Assembly: GCA_977030845.1 (NCBI GenBank)
Contig: OZ365116.1
Location: forward strand, 3,038,001-3,102,000
Length of the DNA stretch: 64,000 nucleotides
Source of the DNA: Fimbriosthenelais zetlandica
Lineage: Eukaryota
Direction of reading: 5' to 3'
Shown: in pieces, positions 1,830 to 57,594 of the stretch
Numbering within the stretch: position 1 is the stretch's first letter
How the letters are laid out: each line of letters opens with the position of its first letter
Program-made: the position numbers and the translations under genes
Notes under the pieces: generated by a model
The model's input: only the letters and a program-made list of their open reading frames with translations
Databases searched by the model: none
What the model was told of the DNA's origin: nothing

Positions 1830-2090
1830 GCAGAATGAATAGATTTCGTTGTGAAGTTGTGCAGGGAATTCCTAGCTTAACTTAGACAATTGGCTTCCTG
1901 CAAATTGAGCCAGGTAAAAGGTCCATTGCTGTAAAAATGATAGAGATCTGAGAGCAGTGAGAGGTGGTATAGACCATTATTTGAGAGGTGCTCGTTTGCT
2001 CTAGTATAGGCTTGATATATATATTGAAGAGAGCAGAGAAGATGGCGCCGCGTAAAGCAAAGCATTTCATTGTGTGAGAACTGAGTATAT
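1830..2090 (-). mobile_element. Degenerate LINE (L2/CR1-like) reverse transcriptase fragment
   Basis: GAIFSALFNIYIKPILE resembles GSILSPLLFNIYxKP; downstream W..ANCL(K)L resembles WxxxNxLxLN; frameshifted. Confidence 0.5.
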
Positions 2091-4299
2091 TCATCAGGTG
2101 TACAAACAGAAGTTTCATGCTGTAGTTTGCTCAGGTAAATGTCCCACTTTAAGCTTTATATTTATCCCCCAAACATTACATACATACACCATTTATCCCT
2201 CAGCTTGCCTGCATGTCAATTTGTGACTTGAGTAGTTATGAAGCCTCACATTGCAGGCTGTTTATTATTGATATTGTAGCATCTCCAAATAAAATGCCCT
2301 CCACCTTAGCATCTCTTCTCTGACAAATATATCTCCATCCAACCTTGGTCAACATATGTGTCTGCCTGGCCCTCGGTTAAATGACCTTTTCCTTAGAGTT
2401 TCCCCCTGTGAGACCAACCCAATGAGACTCTAGTCTTTGGTGAGGACGAGGTAGGGCCTGCTCATTCTGCCCTTTGTTCCTTCCTCGTTAGTCGTTTTTA
2501 TACGACTACCAGTTGCGAGTATATAGTTGGTGAGTGAACAATAAGTCCCCGGGATGGTCCCTAAAGGTCGCCTCCTCTCTCCTCCTCTCTCTCCTAATTA
2601 AAAACACATTGTCTGTGTACGACCACTTAGTATGGTGATGACCGGCTTGAAAGCTTCTAACTACTAAGCTGCCAGCTTGAGGCTGACTAAGACCTAACAG
2701 TCTGCCCGCTCTATTTCCCTCTTTTTCTCACTCAGCTTATTCTGAATTCAGCTCTGTATGTCGAAGGCTGTAAAGAACGCCATTGGTGAGGACGACCTCG
2801 AGAATTAAAAAATACTTACAAGAAAAGTTTTGCCTTTATTAAGGTCAAATTTTCCAATAAAAGGTAACTTATTAAATGTATTACATCCAAGAAAAGCCAT
2901 GGGAAAAAGATTGTAGTTTCGAAATGAGAAATTTGAGAGTTACTATGGCGGCCAGCGGATGCGTCATTTAGAACCTCTTTGAACTTGTCCACTTATCAGA
3001 GTACTTTCTCATAATATCGATCTTTTATTGCCTTCCGTAACCATCTGTTTTAATACAAAAACAAATTCACAAAAAGTCAAATTTACTGCTAACTTAAGCT
3101 GAAATTATTTTAATTGAAACTTAATTTTAAAGTGGATTCGGGATCCTTTTAATGGTCTTGCATGGTCATCTTTAGAATATGGCCTTGAGTTTTAATTAGC
3201 TTTCCTTTAGAATGATATTAGAATGACAAAGGTTGGGGAATTTAGTTGAGATGAACGATGACATTTCACACTACTATCAAAGCACTTTAATTAATCTCTT
3301 ATGAAGATGAATAGTTTTAATCATCAAGACTTTTATCACTTACGTTTGAGTGACTTCTGAGTCTTTTCAATTCTAAAGAACTCTCATTTTACTTGTGACT
3401 ATACAAGAAAGTCTATATCTAATTAATCTCAGAGGTTCAGGAATCATTTCAAATTCCTGATGAAAGTTGTGTAACTGAATGAGTTCTCTTGCGATTCCTT
3501 CGTCAAAAAGTTGAGCATATGAGATTGACTGGGGTTAGCTGGCCCATATGGCCTGCTAGGCCTGTGATCTCTGAACTTAGATAGCTTTCCTACTACCAGC
3601 TGCTGCCGAGTCAACGCCTAATCCTGGGATCTAGATCTGCTGCTCCCTGTGTAAAGATCCATCTCCGCTCAAACTTACCAATCCCGCCTTAAGCACCTTT
3701 CATGCTCATGTGGTCTTCCTTGTGAAAGCCTACCATACACAAGTACCCCCTAATACCAATTTTTACTAATACAACTTTTATTGGAGGCAAACTAAAACTT
3801 CTTGACCTCGCTGCAGGTGCTATACTGAAAATTTAATTTTTGATCTTATCAATCATGTGTATATATATAAAGGGAGACTATATAGATTATTCGCTAACAA
3901 TGGTCCTTCCTCAGGTTTGCCATATGCTCAGCATGTATTATTTGGGCAGGAAGGAAGCAGTCACCTGGTATTTCCCCTTATTTATGACCGTGCAGGTGCA
4001 GGACATTCATAATGCAATGTGTTTCCACTATCATTTCTCCTCTAGTCCCCAACTATAATAATCAATTCCAAACTCGGCCAGTAGAGAACCCAAGGAGGTG
4101 TTGGTATGGTTTAATTTCCATTAATGGGACTCAGCCTGATTGAATATCGGCTAAAACGGGCCTTAATAATGTGAAGAGTGTCCCTAAAAAGCCTCTAATA
4201 TGGAGGACAGGGTGATGGTGAGAGCTGGTGGTGGGGGATGATCTTGTCTTCATTCTCGTTATTGCTGGGCGATTGTAGGCAGGAAGACTATGATAAAAC

Positions 4300-7060: not shown

Positions 7061-8999
7061 AAAAATATTATCCCCAACAATAAGTATTCTAATCGTATGT
7101 AATCCCTTTGCCATTTGATGATAGGCCATATAATGGAGGAATTATAAAGTGCATTATATTTTTTAAAGACGGCTATTATTGCAGCTCTGATATTTCCATA
7201 CAAATTGCCTCTGTAATGCATCTGTGTGTGCGATTTGAGATGGAAATTTCTATGGGTTTTGCTTTGTAAATAACACTTAGAAAATTACAACTCTTTCACT
7301 TACTGTTAAATGTCAAAAGTTAGAAGAAAATAAGCTTCACATATCCAATGAACAACTGGATTGGACAATGGTCGTATTGACTTCAATTTCAGTTTGCAAT
7401 TTTTGCGAACCTTCTGATAGGAGATCGCACTAGTGACTTGTATACAAATAAATATACATGATTGATGAGAGAAAGCTGGCCTGTTTTTCATGCCGGTAGA
7501 CTTGTCGTACAGATATTTGAGTTTGTCTGATTGAGGATCAGTCATTTGTTCTCCCTCACATATTGATTGCTCTTGGCAGGACTCATTCAGAGTGTAGTTG
7601 ACCATGTAACAGTTCCACCCAAACAGAACCAGTCATTACATGGCTTCATTGCAACTACTCCAACAACACCAAACCCCAGATGGGTATGAGAACTATGTGG
7701 CATAAAATGTTCCTATTGTGGGAAGAAAAATACGTTCAAGTGGAAAATACCCTCTGGGGTCTGCTCTCTACTGATGGAATTACAAACCTCTTGTTCGTAA
7801 AAACGGCCAGGAGTCCCTGACGCCTACTGTGTGGCCTAGTAGTGCTGAAATTACTGCACTTCTACTAGTCTGATTCGGAAATTAAACCTGTTTTCCTGAC
7901 AGGATTTATTCATTCACTAAGTACCTATTACCATCTAAACAGCTGAGCTGTTTCCCCAATTAACTTTTTCTCTCGGGTTTACTGCGCTTAAAGGAGGTTT
8001 AAAAATGTTATTCTCTGCCTTTCTCTAATAAATTTGTCAAAGGTCGTGTTGTTCCAGGGGAGTGCCAGCCTCGGAAGAAATGAAAACTAATGTGAAGTTT
8101 GTAGCGGGGAGCATTCCACAGACATTAAATGATGCACATTGATGGTAATTATGGTAATTCTTGTGGAACTCCAGTCGGAATCTAATGTGGAACTGACCTT
8201 TGAAACAGTACAAGCAATGAATAGGATTTAATTGAGAGGACTGGGATGAATGCATGCATAATGAAGTGATCAATGTGACAATGTACATCTCACGCTCATC
8301 CACCCTTCCTTGTTAAGCTGTCAACTCAATAAGTTGACAATCAAAAATCAACTCAATTTGTCAGAATCTAATTTTATCACTGGATATTCCGCTATGTACA
8401 TGTACTCGACATGTTCATAGTCTCAGGTACATGGACTGTTTCCATGAACTACAGCTACAAAACAGGCATGTAGTTATTGTCTATGAGGAATGATTGTCGG
8501 GTGAGATGATAATGTCAAATGTTATGGCTCCATTCTTCTCCAACCTTGGCCTTATCTACCGGTAATTCTGGACATTTCTATGACAAAAAGATTTATTGGT
8601 TTGCGGAGAGAGTTAGCTCAACATTGAACGACATTCCGTGCTTTATAAAGACACAGTGATTAATTATACAGGCTCTTTATTGTGCTTCTCACTTTATTGT
8701 GCTTCTACAAAAGGTTTTTTCTTGAAACAATGAAGCTCATGAATGTGTGCCATTCATGGTGAGGTGGTTACAGATCGTGGACATGTTAATATCCCGCACT
8801 CTGTGCATATTCAAACCCTCTGAGGATCGTTTGGTGGGATGGCTATTGTGCTCGCCCCACATTCCGTGAGCTATGGCTCCTGTTGTGACAACCCTAACTC
8901 CATTGCATGTTCAGCAGACACCAATGACCATAGAGAAATCAGATTCAGCCAGTATTTTGCACATGTGATGGATGTTCCCTTGTCCATGTCATGGAAATG

Positions 9000-54889: not shown

Positions 54890-55455
54890 TCTATGATTGC
54901 GATCGTCACCGGACATCCTTAAAAAACTTAGATAACAAATATTTAATAACCAAACACTTAACCTCTTGGTAAACTCTTGGAAAACGTCTTTTATGACCGA
55001 AAAACATGCGAGTATGGTAAACAAAATGTCACTAAATGTCTTTACTTCTCCAGGATGTCCATAGAGGGCGCCCCTAGCATAGCCTATATAATATAGGCCT
55101 TGTGATTGACCCTACTTTGAATATTATTCGCACATCTATTTGTAATTCTTCATGTGTATAGGCCTATTTAAAGTCCAGACGTGTTGGTCTAGTATTACGT
55201 ACGCAGACTTTAGCGGTATCATCAAAGACGGTATAATTGCCACATTTGAGGTAGTACTTCCTGCAGCAGGTACACGCCTGTCCTCCCCTTATACTGGCTC
55301 CACACTGAATGAAATAATCAGCACGCTGCTTCACGGCAAATAAACCAGACGGATTCTTATCGCATTTACCATCACAGGGATCTGTAAAACGATTGGAAAT
55401 ATGAGAACAATTGTATGTGATTCATATTGTAGCTTAGATATTGATCAATTATATT

Positions 55456-55591: not shown

Positions 55592-56367
55592 TTAGGAAAC
55601 TCTTGCTTTAACTATAATTGATCTTTTTAGTGAGTTACCATAATCATCATCTGGTGGTTGATCCTGGTAGTCCTGGTCGTCCTCATAGTAATCATACGAC
55701 CCTCCATAATCACCACCATCTCCTCCATAATATTGCTGCCCATAATCAGAGTAATCAGTGTCATTGGGATCCTCATAATTGTCTCCATCACCATTTCCAT
55801 AGTCGCCTCCATCAGCCTGACCATTGCCATAGTCCGCATCATTTCCTTGACCATTTCCATAGTCCACATATCCATAGTTAGCGCCATTGCCATAGTCTGC
55901 CCCATTGTCATTGTCATTGCCATAGTCTGCCCCATTGTCATAGCCATTGCCATAATTTGCCCCATTGCCATAGTGTTCGCCATTGCCATGGTCTGCCCCA
56001 TTGCCATAGCCATTGCCATGGTCTGCACCATTGCCATAACCATTATGTTGGGCTGTTTTAGGTTGGTAAGGGTAGAGACTATAAGCCAACAATTGGCTGC
56101 CTAAATGATTATACCAGCTGTAAGGTGCCACTGGTAGACCGTAACCATAGTAACTGTTATAGTCAGCCTGCTGATTCCCACTGTCGTGGTTATTGTACTG
56201 GTTAACATGGTGATTCCCATTCTCGTGGTTATGGTACTGGTTACCATGGTTTGGGTAGTAGGAGTAGTCATAATTAGAATACTGACTACTCTCATCTGTT
56301 AGTCTTCCATCTTGATCATTCTGGGTGTCAGAGGTGGGTGGGGGGCTTCCACATCTGTCATGATCAC
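55592..56367 (-). CDS. Secreted LU-like gene exon 4 (776 nt, low-complexity tail)
   Basis: tttttgtacag|GTGATCAT; 258 open codons continuous with the ORF-track entry 55592..56131; Asn/His/Tyr-rich block, then GNG repeats, then DY-rich block, ending LKRSIIVKARVS*. Confidence 0.88.
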
Positions 56368-56565
56368 CTGTACAAAAAGGTGATCAGTTAGATTTTAAAT
56401 ACATATATATAGACTTTGAAATAAATATACAAATGGCAATAATAATGGATTTATTAATTGGAGAGAGAGACGGAGAGGAGCAGATAGAGACATGTAGATA
56501 GAGAGAGTAGATAGAGACATGTATGGAGAGAGAGGGGGAGAAAAAAGGGGAATAGAAAGAGAGGT

Positions 56566-56611
<46 letters not shown>

Positions 56612-57594
56612 AGACAGAGATAAATAGATAGAAAGGGGTGGGGGAGGGAGAGGTAAAACATAAGACTTTACCTAGCTGTCCACTGTTACAATTATCACCG
56701 TCACAGAACCACCAGAGTGAGGTATCAGGACCCTGGAACTTACAGTTGACGTATACGTTAACATCGCCAGGTAACTTCTCCCTATCAGCGCATCCTCTGT
56801 ACACCACTGCTCAAAACATGGACAAACAATTCGAGATACATTTTGAAAACACATTCCTTTTGTGAATTTCTATGAGAAATTGATAATTTATGGATGTAAA
56901 ATAGTGTGGAGTAAATAGAATATATCTTACATCCATTGAAATCTTGTCGTATAAAGCAGCGACCTTTGTCGCATGGCACGACCATCTTGTCTATTACCCC
57001 AATGCCATTGAGGCTGCAGTCGGGATATCCCACCTTCACGTAGGTGTCATTGTTAACACCTTTCATGTAACCTGACGGTGCGTAGTTACAGTCAAAACAT
57101 CCATAACCTATAACGACAAGTGATATGTATAATCTATAACAATAAATGACATCCATAACCTATAACGACAAGTGATATGTTTAATCTATAACAATAAATG
57201 ACATCCATAACCTATAACGACAAGTGATATGTATAACTTATAACAATAAATGACATCCATAACCTATAACGACAAGTGATATGTATAATCTATAACAATA
57301 AATGACATCTATATCTTATAACGACAAATATCTGTTAAGGAACAGACCTAAAGGCTAAAGTTCCATTAGTCCTACTGTTTGGTTTAATTTAACAAGTTTC
57401 TCCCGTTCTTTTCCAAGTATTAAAAGTGTAAAATGTTGATTTATATATAAGCCCTGTATGATAGTATGTTTTGTGAATGTTTTTCTTTGAGATTGAGAGT
57501 AGACCTATACTTTACCACTGGTGGTGGAAGCATCGTGCGCCCACACTGTACAGGTAAGAAACCATGTCAGCGAGATCCACGTTCTCGTCTCCAT
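55592..57594 (-). CDS. Putative secreted 388-aa protein: signal peptide, Ly6/uPAR (three-finger)-like Cys-rich domain, Gly-Asn-Tyr-Asp low-complexity repeat tail
   Basis: complement(join(57594..57516,57107..56931,56806..56672,56367..55592)) = 1167 nt, three phase-1 GT-AG introns, open throughout. Starts METRTWISLTWFLTCTVWA; Cys pattern CFDC..YPDC..PCDKGRCF..RGC..NC..FCDGDNCN; tail has GNGYGNGAD(H/Y) repeats then acidic YD-rich sequence; AATAAA signals 112 and 131 nt after the stop. The gene model is solid; the family label is inferred from the Cys pattern. Confidence 0.85.
56460..56650. repeat. GA-rich low-complexity tract with a (GA)n core in intron 3 of the LU-like gene
   Basis: Pure GA run at about 56571-56606 inside a purine-rich tract. 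Confidence 0.9.
56672..56806 (-). CDS. Secreted LU-like gene exon 3 (135 nt)
   Basis: ttgagcag|TGGTGTAC...CAGCTAG|gtaaag; (L)VYRGCADREKLPGDVNVYVNCKFQGPDTSLWWFCDGDNCNSGQL. Confidence 0.88.
   Translation of the reverse strand, partial: WCTEDALIGRSYLAMLTYTSTVSSRVLIPHSGGSVTVIIVTVDS
56931..57107 (-). CDS. Secreted LU-like gene exon 2 (177 nt)
   Basis: gtcgttatag|GTTATGG...AATGGAT|gtaaga; (G)YGCFDCNYAPSGYMKGVNNDTYVKVGYPDCSLNGIGVIDKMVVPCDKGRCFIRQDFNG. Confidence 0.88.
57097..57325. repeat. 52-bp tandem repeat (4 copies plus a decayed one) spanning the exon-2 acceptor of the LU-like gene
   Basis: Minus-strand unit GTTATGGATGTCATTTATTGTTATAGATTATACATATCACTTGTCGTTATAG; ttatag|GTTATGGATGT junctions at 57107, 57159, 57211, 57263. 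Confidence 0.95.
57516..57594 (-). CDS. Secreted LU-like gene exon 1 (signal peptide, 79 nt)
   Basis: ATG at 57594, METRTWISLTWFLTCTVWAHDASTTS, donor G|gtaaag; phase 1 matches the next exon. Confidence 0.75.

Follow-up and report, generated by a model that had tools for sequence, protein, structure and literature searches.

A gene of Fimbriosthenelais zetlandica that couples a divergent Ly6/uPAR-type domain to a CBM14-like domain through an acidic repeat spacer, and its unnamed family in annelids and brachiopods

The locus studied here raises the question of whether a protein that seems to end in a Gly-Asn-rich repeat tail really ends there, and what such a protein might be made for. It lies on the minus strand of a stretch of 64,000 nucleotides from Fimbriosthenelais zetlandica (GenBank assembly GCA_977030845.1, contig OZ365116.1, positions 3,038,001 to 3,102,000 of the forward strand), which is called the window in the following and whose own numbering is used throughout. 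An initial annotation, made from the sequence alone, had described a gene of four exons for a secreted protein of 388 amino acids, in which a three-finger-like Cys domain is followed by the repeats as a C-terminal tail. According to our analysis the gene has five exons (57594-55164) and a product of 446 amino acids, in which a divergent Ly6/uPAR three-finger head, an acidic low-complexity spacer and a CBM14 domain follow each other. That this protein is secreted and orders or hardens a chitin-based structure is the reading which we favour and which we hold to be fairly probable.

Reading the frame of exon 4 to its stop at 55592 gives 389 instead of 388 amino acids. The last 14 of these residues, NSLKRSIIVKARVS, follow the best phase-1 donor of exon 4 and are conserved nowhere. 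This donor (G/GTAACT at 55639/55638, the slash marking the splice point here and below) stands just after ...DDDY and has the highest score of all phase-1 donors of the exon, 6.3, while the other three donors of the gene score 5.05-6.8 on the same rough matrix. Downstream by 257 bp, the acceptor ttttacag at 55382/55381 is the sole one that keeps the frame of a further exon open. This exon 5 (55164..55381, minus strand) has 72 codons, ends with the stop TAG at 55166-55164 and encodes a CBM14/peritrophin-A-like domain with 8 Cys and the pattern (D)PCDGKC..NPSGLF..FIQCG..CTCC..KC..FDD..KVC. Judged by donor score and lack of conservation, the stretch 55592..55638 (minus strand; GTAACT...), which had been read as the 14 C-terminal codons plus stop, is the putative start of intron 4, and the C-terminal tail of the initial annotation is probably intron read-through.

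Relatives of the gene point in the same direction. In Owenia fusiformis (P0007) and Lingula anatina (P0021) a phase-1 intron is located directly before the (N/S)PC..KC domain, and a second phase-1 intron at NG/xVYRGC is found at the same point as in the window gene. The orthologue L015, a locus of the European Nucleotide Archive (ENA) assembly ERZ25767047, has an extra intron before GDSEDRC as the window gene does, and a phase-1 GTGAGT donor closes its large low-complexity exon after ...KKDY, the next exon starting with NPCDGTC. In addition, P0022 (MERC, ERR1711872), a protein from the Tara marine metatranscriptome, contains head and C-terminal domain within one spliced message. Because the tail is not conserved, exon 5 is conserved and matches in phase, and the relatives carry introns at the same point, we conclude that the gene extends to 55164 and encodes 446 amino acids. 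A further sequence, P0037, was considered as transcript support and set aside, as it proved to be genomic read-through.

One could also suppose that the protein of 389 amino acids is complete and ends in its repeat tail at 55592, the CBM14 exon being part of another gene or a relic. The frame is indeed open to the stop at 55592, AATAAA-like signals are present downstream and the GTAACT donor at 55638 is imperfect when compared to the consensus. However, this would leave unexplained a 14-residue tail without conservation next to a CBM14 exon that has kept its 8 Cys intact, matches the family profile with E 1e-26, lies only 257 bp away in matching phase and has neither a start codon or signal sequence of its own nor an upstream exon within the gap. 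Moreover, the relatives of which both ends are known join the head to CBM14, with an intron at the same point. We regard a protein ending at 55592 as very improbable.

The CBM14 fold is a distorted beta-sandwich whose two sheets, one with three strands and one with two, are locked by disulfides, and canonical members have six conserved Cys forming three disulfides. When compared with the CBM_14 profile of Pfam, exon 5 of the window gene gave E 0.0058 and 17.2 bits over profile positions 1-48 of 53, and 12 of the 13 C-terminal domains of the family matched the same profile (best E 2.4e-5). A profile of the family domains run against PDB sequences found Avr4 as best match (6bn0, 4z4a); among the weaker rows are EHEP, which is a polyphenol-binding protein of Aplysia, as well as Der p 23 and the CBM14 of chitotriosidase (CHIT1). 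An AlphaFold2 model of exon 5, built from an alignment of 13 rows, has five strands and a mean predicted local distance difference test score (pLDDT) of 80.9. The Foldseek search of this model against PDB gave CBM14 domains for all of the top 12 matches, among them Avr4 with chitohexaose, CHIT1, Blo t 12, Der p 23 and EHEP, at a probability of 0.98-1.00, which falls to 0.12 at the next match; against the Swiss-Prot part of the AlphaFold database all of the top 30 were again CBM14 (chitinases, peritrophins, Pif, obstructor-E and similar proteins). The features and the structure in the ESM-Atlas concur on CBM14. By its modelled structure, the exon-5 domain has the CBM14 fold.

In fold and in its aromatic-rich beta-hairpin motifs the domain resembles those of Avr4, the chitin-binding domain of chitotriosidase, peritrophins, obstructors, Pif and the ChtBD2 proteins of annelid tubes. 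It is unlike canonical CBM14 in its Cys (8 in the window protein and 9 in the family consensus, instead of 6), in the CxCC cluster and, as far as the window sequence is concerned, in a score below the cut-off. Among the structural components of the chitinous tube of a siboglinid annelid, ChtBD2 (CBM14) proteins rank first in abundance (PMC8476170). No CBM14 protein with a Ly6 domain was found described in the literature covered.

Members of the Ly6/uPAR superfamily have domains of about 70-110 residues, with 8-10 Cys in a conserved order and a CxxC start. The head of the window protein opens with CxxC and has ten Cys in this order. Nine of them (residues 30, 33, 57, 72, 77, 92, 108, 121 and 126) belong to the part that ends FCDGDNCN and the tenth, residue 137 in DRCG, is encoded by exon 4, just as had been read initially; translation confirmed this arrangement. 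In an alignment of 11 heads all ten Cys columns are kept, nine of them invariant and one in at least 90% of the sequences, and the motifs CFIR.D.NG, YRGC, (W/Y)(Y/F)FC and LCN are conserved as well. At the place of the canonical CCxxxxCN the window has FCDGDNCN and the family FCxGDLCN, which keeps C-x4-CN with a Phe instead of the first Cys, and the family heads contain an extra conserved Cys about 10 residues beyond the CN.

Searches with the head lead to a family of its own and, more distantly, to three-finger proteins. A HMMER search (phmmer) with exon 2 as query against 1.84 billion proteins returned seven matches, six of which represent one family at 45-51% identity and come from Owenia fusiformis and ENA assemblies. 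The top match, P0001, is a bacterial gliding-motility-like repeat protein with 30% identity over 36 residues and was discarded as unrelated. Another search extended the family by more Owenia paralogues, by LOC106163944 of Lingula and by the metatranscriptome protein. All 11 heads align with the QVR profile of Pfam (PF17064) over positions 2-86 of 86, at 22-25 bits; DUF7622 is matched by 11 and DUF753 by 8 of the 11, all below threshold. The head being divided between exons, the three exon pieces of the window gene had no Pfam match when run singly, even with the limit set at E 10. Likewise, scans of the own genome with the profiles PF00021 (UPAR_LY6) and PF17064 did not match the locus, and the head profile found chance-level matches only among PDB sequences.

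Regarding the fold, the Lingula relative is represented in the ESM-Atlas by a model with a pLDDT of 0.61 over the whole protein, and the neighbours of its residues 20-134 are all three-finger clusters with a template modelling (TM) score of 0.50-0.74, namely QVR, the C. elegans Ly-6-related proteins, UPAR_LY6, Toxin_TOLIP, LYPD6B and the ectodomain of TGF-beta receptor II (TbetaR2). The closest cluster is Ly-6-related with TM 0.60-0.74 (0.74 over 109 residues). Together with the full-length, sub-threshold QVR alignments of all 11 heads, these neighbours support the three-finger-like head of the initial annotation. We consider the head a divergent Ly6/uPAR three-finger domain, the membership in the superfamily being well supported and the threshold of no Pfam family being passed. 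Like Quiver/Sleepless of Drosophila (PF17064 QVR) and the Ly-6-related proteins of C. elegans it starts with CxxC, contains RGC and ends with C-x4-CN, but it differs from them in FC for CC, the extra Cys about 10 residues after CN and the sub-cut-off score, and the whole protein differs from Quiver and its kind in being fused to CBM14 and in showing no anchor of glycosylphosphatidylinositol (GPI).

This last point bears on the idea that the protein is a signalling modulator of the Ly6/QVR type, i.e. a prototoxin whose targets are channels or receptors, the remainder of the chain being incidental. QVR is the nearest Pfam model of the head, as such a modulator would suggest. However, neither the window protein nor any of its relatives shows a transmembrane or GPI anchor, and CBM14 and low-complexity sequence of structural appearance invariably accompany the head. 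Because no anchor is apparent and CBM14 is obligatory, we consider a modulator extremely unlikely.

The reading which we favour, that of a chitin-bound matrix protein, builds on a gene whose first four exons are present as initially annotated (57594-57516, 57107-56931, 56809-56672 and 56367 onward), with a frame that is open on translation. Introns 1-3 have GT-AG borders and, by sequence reading and translation, every one of them is in phase 1. Exon 1 (57516..57594, minus strand) contains the start codon and a signal-like leader and ends at the phase-1 donor GTG/GTAAAG. Translation confirmed the hydrophobic leader, which reads METRTWISLTWFLTCTVWA and continues with HD; a signal cleavage would probably fall after VWA at residue 19. 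When aligned, the leader corresponds to the signal peptides that the relatives in Owenia and Lingula have right before the GYG..C start of the head. Exon 2 (56931..57107, minus strand) encodes the first half of the head from CFDCNYAPSGY to CDKGRCFIRQDFNG with 5 Cys and exon 3 (56672..56809, minus strand) the second half from VVYRGCA to WWFCDGDNCNSGQL with 4 Cys. The phase-1 intron that follows NG at their border is kept in Owenia, Lingula and L015. Exon 4 (55639..56367, minus strand) starts with the tenth Cys of the head (GDHDRCG), continues with a spacer of 237 amino acids and ends ...DDDY at the phase-1 donor; in the L015 orthologue it likewise begins with GDSEDRC and ends ..DY in phase 1. 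In a scan of the own genome with family profiles, exon 2 gave an E-value of 1.6e-9, exon 3 of 8.7e-12 and exon 5 of 1.0e-26. Because these three exons match the family with such E-values and at 49-56% identity, the locus is not a chance open reading frame.

Two of the introns contain repeats. Within intron 1 a 52-bp tandem repeat of 4.4 copies with 94% matches (57097..57329, minus strand) carries the acceptor of exon 2, TTATAG/GTTATGG, four times, at 57269, 57217, 57165 and 57113. Only the most downstream of these copies, with the exon start at 57107, opens the frame, and each of the upstream ones would add a multiple of 52 nucleotides. Much of intron 3 is occupied, at 56554-56620, by an (AG)n microsatellite, roughly 25 units long, and short repeats of the AGAGACATGT type.

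Several points weigh against the gene and protein as reconstructed here. The GTAACT donor lacks the usual G at +5, and the join of exon 4 to exon 5 (55639 to 55381) is a prediction from comparative evidence only. At the level of the domains, the gathering cut-offs of Pfam are 27.3 bits for PF17064, 24.8 bits for PF00021 and 22.1 bits for CBM_14 (PF01607); on QVR the highest scores among the relatives are 22.4-24.6 bits, and on CBM_14 exon 5 of the window gene scores 17.2 bits, in both cases under the respective cut-off. The fold of the window head, which is split over two exons, is judged from that of its relatives and is to this extent a prediction at second hand, and an AlphaFold2 model of the whole Owenia protein P0007 from an alignment of 16 rows was too poor for use (pLDDT 47). 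Finally, the fold matches of the CBM14 domain include soluble immune, digestive and toxin-like proteins; therefore the domain alone is no proof of a structural role.

The latter point brings up the possibility that the protein does not build a hard structure but works as a soluble lectin that recognises chitin in mucus, gut or immunity, comparable in function to VCBP or peritrophins. Its CBM14 would then bind the chitin of gut mucus or that on fungi and prey, with the head as its effector or receptor-binding end. Chitinases, Avr4, peritrophins, EHEP and scoloptoxins, all of them soluble or gut proteins, are among the fold matches, a membrane anchor is absent, and three-finger domains are classic protein-binding modules (PMC3561106). 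What does not fit well are the low-complexity parts with their structural or adhesive look (the G/N/Y/D sequence of the window protein, GNEHYGHG in L015, PKHMPSYPQ in the Owenia protein P0018 and the His-rich part of P0005) and the approximately 12 paralogues in Owenia, a number typical of matrix-protein families. Adhesive-looking repeats and the number of paralogues are nevertheless still compatible with a role in mucus or in a peritrophic matrix. We regard such a lectin as unlikely.

The combination of domains in the window gene, which the initial annotation did not recognise, is not unique to this gene and belongs to a conserved family of annelids and brachiopods with a freely varying low-complexity part. 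The layout of head, linker and CBM14 with the same intron positions is found in about 12 genes of Owenia fusiformis, in one gene of Lingula anatina (LOC106163944), in the marine metatranscriptome sequence P0022, in L015 and in a second gene of the window's genome, and every relative with both ends known couples the head to CBM14. The folded domains are 43-56% identical to the relatives, the highest value being reached with L015 and with Owenia P0016. Nine full members have 19 conserved Cys columns, 18 of which are kept in the window protein and 18 in its paralogue. In the databases all family members are 'unnamed' or 'uncharacterized' and the precomputed Pfam entry is empty for each of them. 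No paper was found on LOC106163944, on XP_013397119 or on a combination of Ly6, chitin binding and shell matrix, in a literature coverage that was incomplete and excluded supplements, and the literature on chaetae, chitin binding and proteomes yielded nothing specific to the family. The two domains and the idea of a chitin-anchored low-complexity matrix are known as such; it is the fusion of a Ly6-type domain to CBM14, as predicted here, and the family carrying it that we did not find described.

The paralogue (C27:20177424-20179700; L028 about 1868-4250, minus strand) is located on the same contig, 17 Mb from the window gene, and has an intact order of Ly6 domain, spacer and CBM14. It has an extra intron inside the first half of the head and no intron between head and spacer. 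In a third copy (C1:45489620-45490800; L029 about 2130-3276, minus strand) the exons of head and CBM14 can still be recognised, the latter with a TAA inside it; this copy probably represents either a pseudogene or a truncated variant. In addition, near-full matches to the head profile within a single exon were found at C21:8799406-8799708 (E 1e-8) and C27:10921700-10922026 (E 3e-8), the open frames being 194 and 292 amino acids long; going by their sequence, these copies are head-only and may lack CBM14, like P0023 and P0024 of Owenia. Within L015, which lies on contig ctg38855 of ERZ25767047, two near-identical CBM14 exons are present at 1063-1266 and 8105-8296; as they are 7 kb apart, the family has been tandemly duplicated in this assembly. 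P0003 and P0006 lie on the same 2-Mb contig as L015.

What varies within the family is the low-complexity sequence. The spacer of the window protein consists of 237 amino acids with 18.6% G, 16.5% Y, 14.8% D and 13.9% N, is disordered and acidic with a net charge of about -37, and its last 45 residues, the D/Y/G block, contain approximately 30% Asp. The core of its array of GNGADYGNGY-type repeats (55883..56044, minus strand) has a period of 30 bp, 5.2 copies and 83% matches, and ten GNG motifs are found at residues 243-322. The N/H/Y block, the Gly-Asn repeats and the acidic D/Y/G block are thus all present as the initial annotation had described them, and its statement that a hydrophobic C-terminus is lacking holds for the models of 389 and 446 amino acids alike, which agrees with a secreted form; the repeat region, however, is not a C-terminal tail but an internal spacer between two folded domains. 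A search for homologous proteins with the exon-4 spacer gave no match, and in the own genome only weak low-complexity matches were obtained.

The L015 spacer has 192 amino acids (Y/G/N/H/D) with GNEHYGHG repeats and a charge of -16, and that of L028 comprises up to about 390 amino acids rich in Q/P/S/T/Y and is near neutral. The members from Owenia and Lingula have a linker of 10-15 residues (Y/S/H/K), and their low-complexity sequence, where present, follows CBM14 in the form of P/Y/H/A repeats. The Owenia protein P0018 (418 amino acids) ends in about 8 PKHMPSYPQ repeats and an acidic end, which recalls the decapeptides of mussel foot proteins. Another Owenia protein, P0005 (416 amino acids, a partial model), has no CBM14; in it a pair of three-finger heads in tandem precedes a long tail rich in His. 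As head and CBM14 are constant and the low-complexity part is variable, the spacer is a fast-evolving cassette and its acidity a trait of the window gene, not of the family.

The acidity of the spacer could nevertheless indicate a Ca2+-binding biomineral matrix protein, as the initial annotation had suggested. With chitin as the scaffold, its Asp-rich part would nucleate calcium carbonate or phosphate or inhibit their formation. Apart from the charge of about -37 and the Asp content of the last 45 residues, this would be in line with the presence of Pif, a chitin-anchored acidic protein of the mollusc shell matrix, among the fold matches of exon 5, and with a family member in Lingula, whose shell is one of chitin and phosphate. 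On the other hand, acidity is not a trait shared by the family (the spacer of the paralogue is near neutral, that of L015 at -16), the members of Owenia and Lingula have short linkers and Owenia is not known to have a mineral skeleton. The Lingula relative was also not found in the main text of the paper on the Lingula genome and shell proteome (the supplements were not covered). A role in biomineralisation seems quite unlikely to us.

A chitin-bound matrix protein, the reading we prefer, would also have counterparts among known materials. In the squid beak, Gly/His/Tyr repeat proteins (HBP) phase-separate and infiltrate the chitin before they are cross-linked (PMC6884462). The GHGxY proteins of the beak, which are accompanied by chitin-binding beak proteins, and the Gly/Tyr- and Asp-rich proteins of the mollusc prism layer have in common with the window protein short Gly/Tyr(/His/Asn) repeats that go with a chitin scaffold, and the GNEHYGHG repeats of L015 resemble the His-rich (GHGxY) ones of the beak. 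This likeness is a compositional analogy only and does not suggest homology. Unlike in the squid beak system, the window protein would have repeats and chitin anchor in one chain, and it is rich in Asn and Asp with little His.

For the head, the insect protein Retroactive offers a comparison. It is a three-finger protein with 10 Cys which is required for the organisation of chitin filaments and the trafficking of Knickkopf, and aromatic residues in its loops are predicted to contact chitin (PMC3561106). Retroactive and the window protein both have a 10-Cys three-finger domain of about 100 amino acids, that of Retroactive acting in a chitin matrix; unlike the window protein, Retroactive is small, single-domain, has a C-terminal hydrophobic anchor region and possesses neither CBM14 nor a low-complexity spacer. 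The likeness is one at the level of the superfamily.

Taken together, the CBM14 domain might anchor the secreted protein on chitin fibrils. The acidic, Tyr/Gly-rich spacer would then occupy the space between the fibrils, where it could self-associate, bind cations or be cross-linked through its Tyr residues, and the three-finger head may provide a second contact, either to a partner protein or to chitin itself, as has been proposed for insect Retroactive. In this manner the protein might give order or hardness to an extracellular structure based on chitin, for example a chaeta, a tube lining, a shell, a cuticle or a jaw. The secreted structural or matrix protein of the initial annotation thereby obtains a concrete chitin anchor in the CBM14 exon that had been missed, while the structural role itself stays a proposal. 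Chitinous chaetae of Lingula are mentioned in PMC4595640. As the family occurs in an annelid and a brachiopod, both with chitinous chaetae, the chaetae are an attractive site; this is a guess, and the lining of a tube or of the gut, the shell, the cuticle, the jaw or the egg coat is just as possible.

One may go further and suppose that the family belongs to an old lophotrochozoan toolkit for the chitinous hard parts common to annelids and brachiopods, namely chaetae and, by extension, tubes or shells, in which CBM14 pins the protein to nascent chitin fibrils, the head orders the chitin in a Retroactive-like manner and swappable cassettes set the material properties. These cassettes (acidic G/N/Y/D, G/H/Y, or P/Y/K/H in Owenia) would act by coacervation, by binding of metal or Ca2+ and by Tyr cross-linking. 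We put this forward as a speculation with a low probability. If it is true, three-finger domains would have joined the organisation of chitin either independently in arthropods and lophotrochozoans or before their split.

For gene annotation, the locus teaches that the repeat-rich 'tails' of ab initio models may conceal another exon. The one-chain design of an anchor and a possibly phase-separating spacer is of interest for chitin-based biomaterials. Little is known about the proteins which shape and harden the chitin structures of annelids and brachiopods, and whether chaetae are homologous between phyla is a matter of debate. For these questions the family, which is conserved, expanded and unnamed, provides concrete candidates that would link a chitin anchor, a three-finger domain and swappable, material-like repeats.

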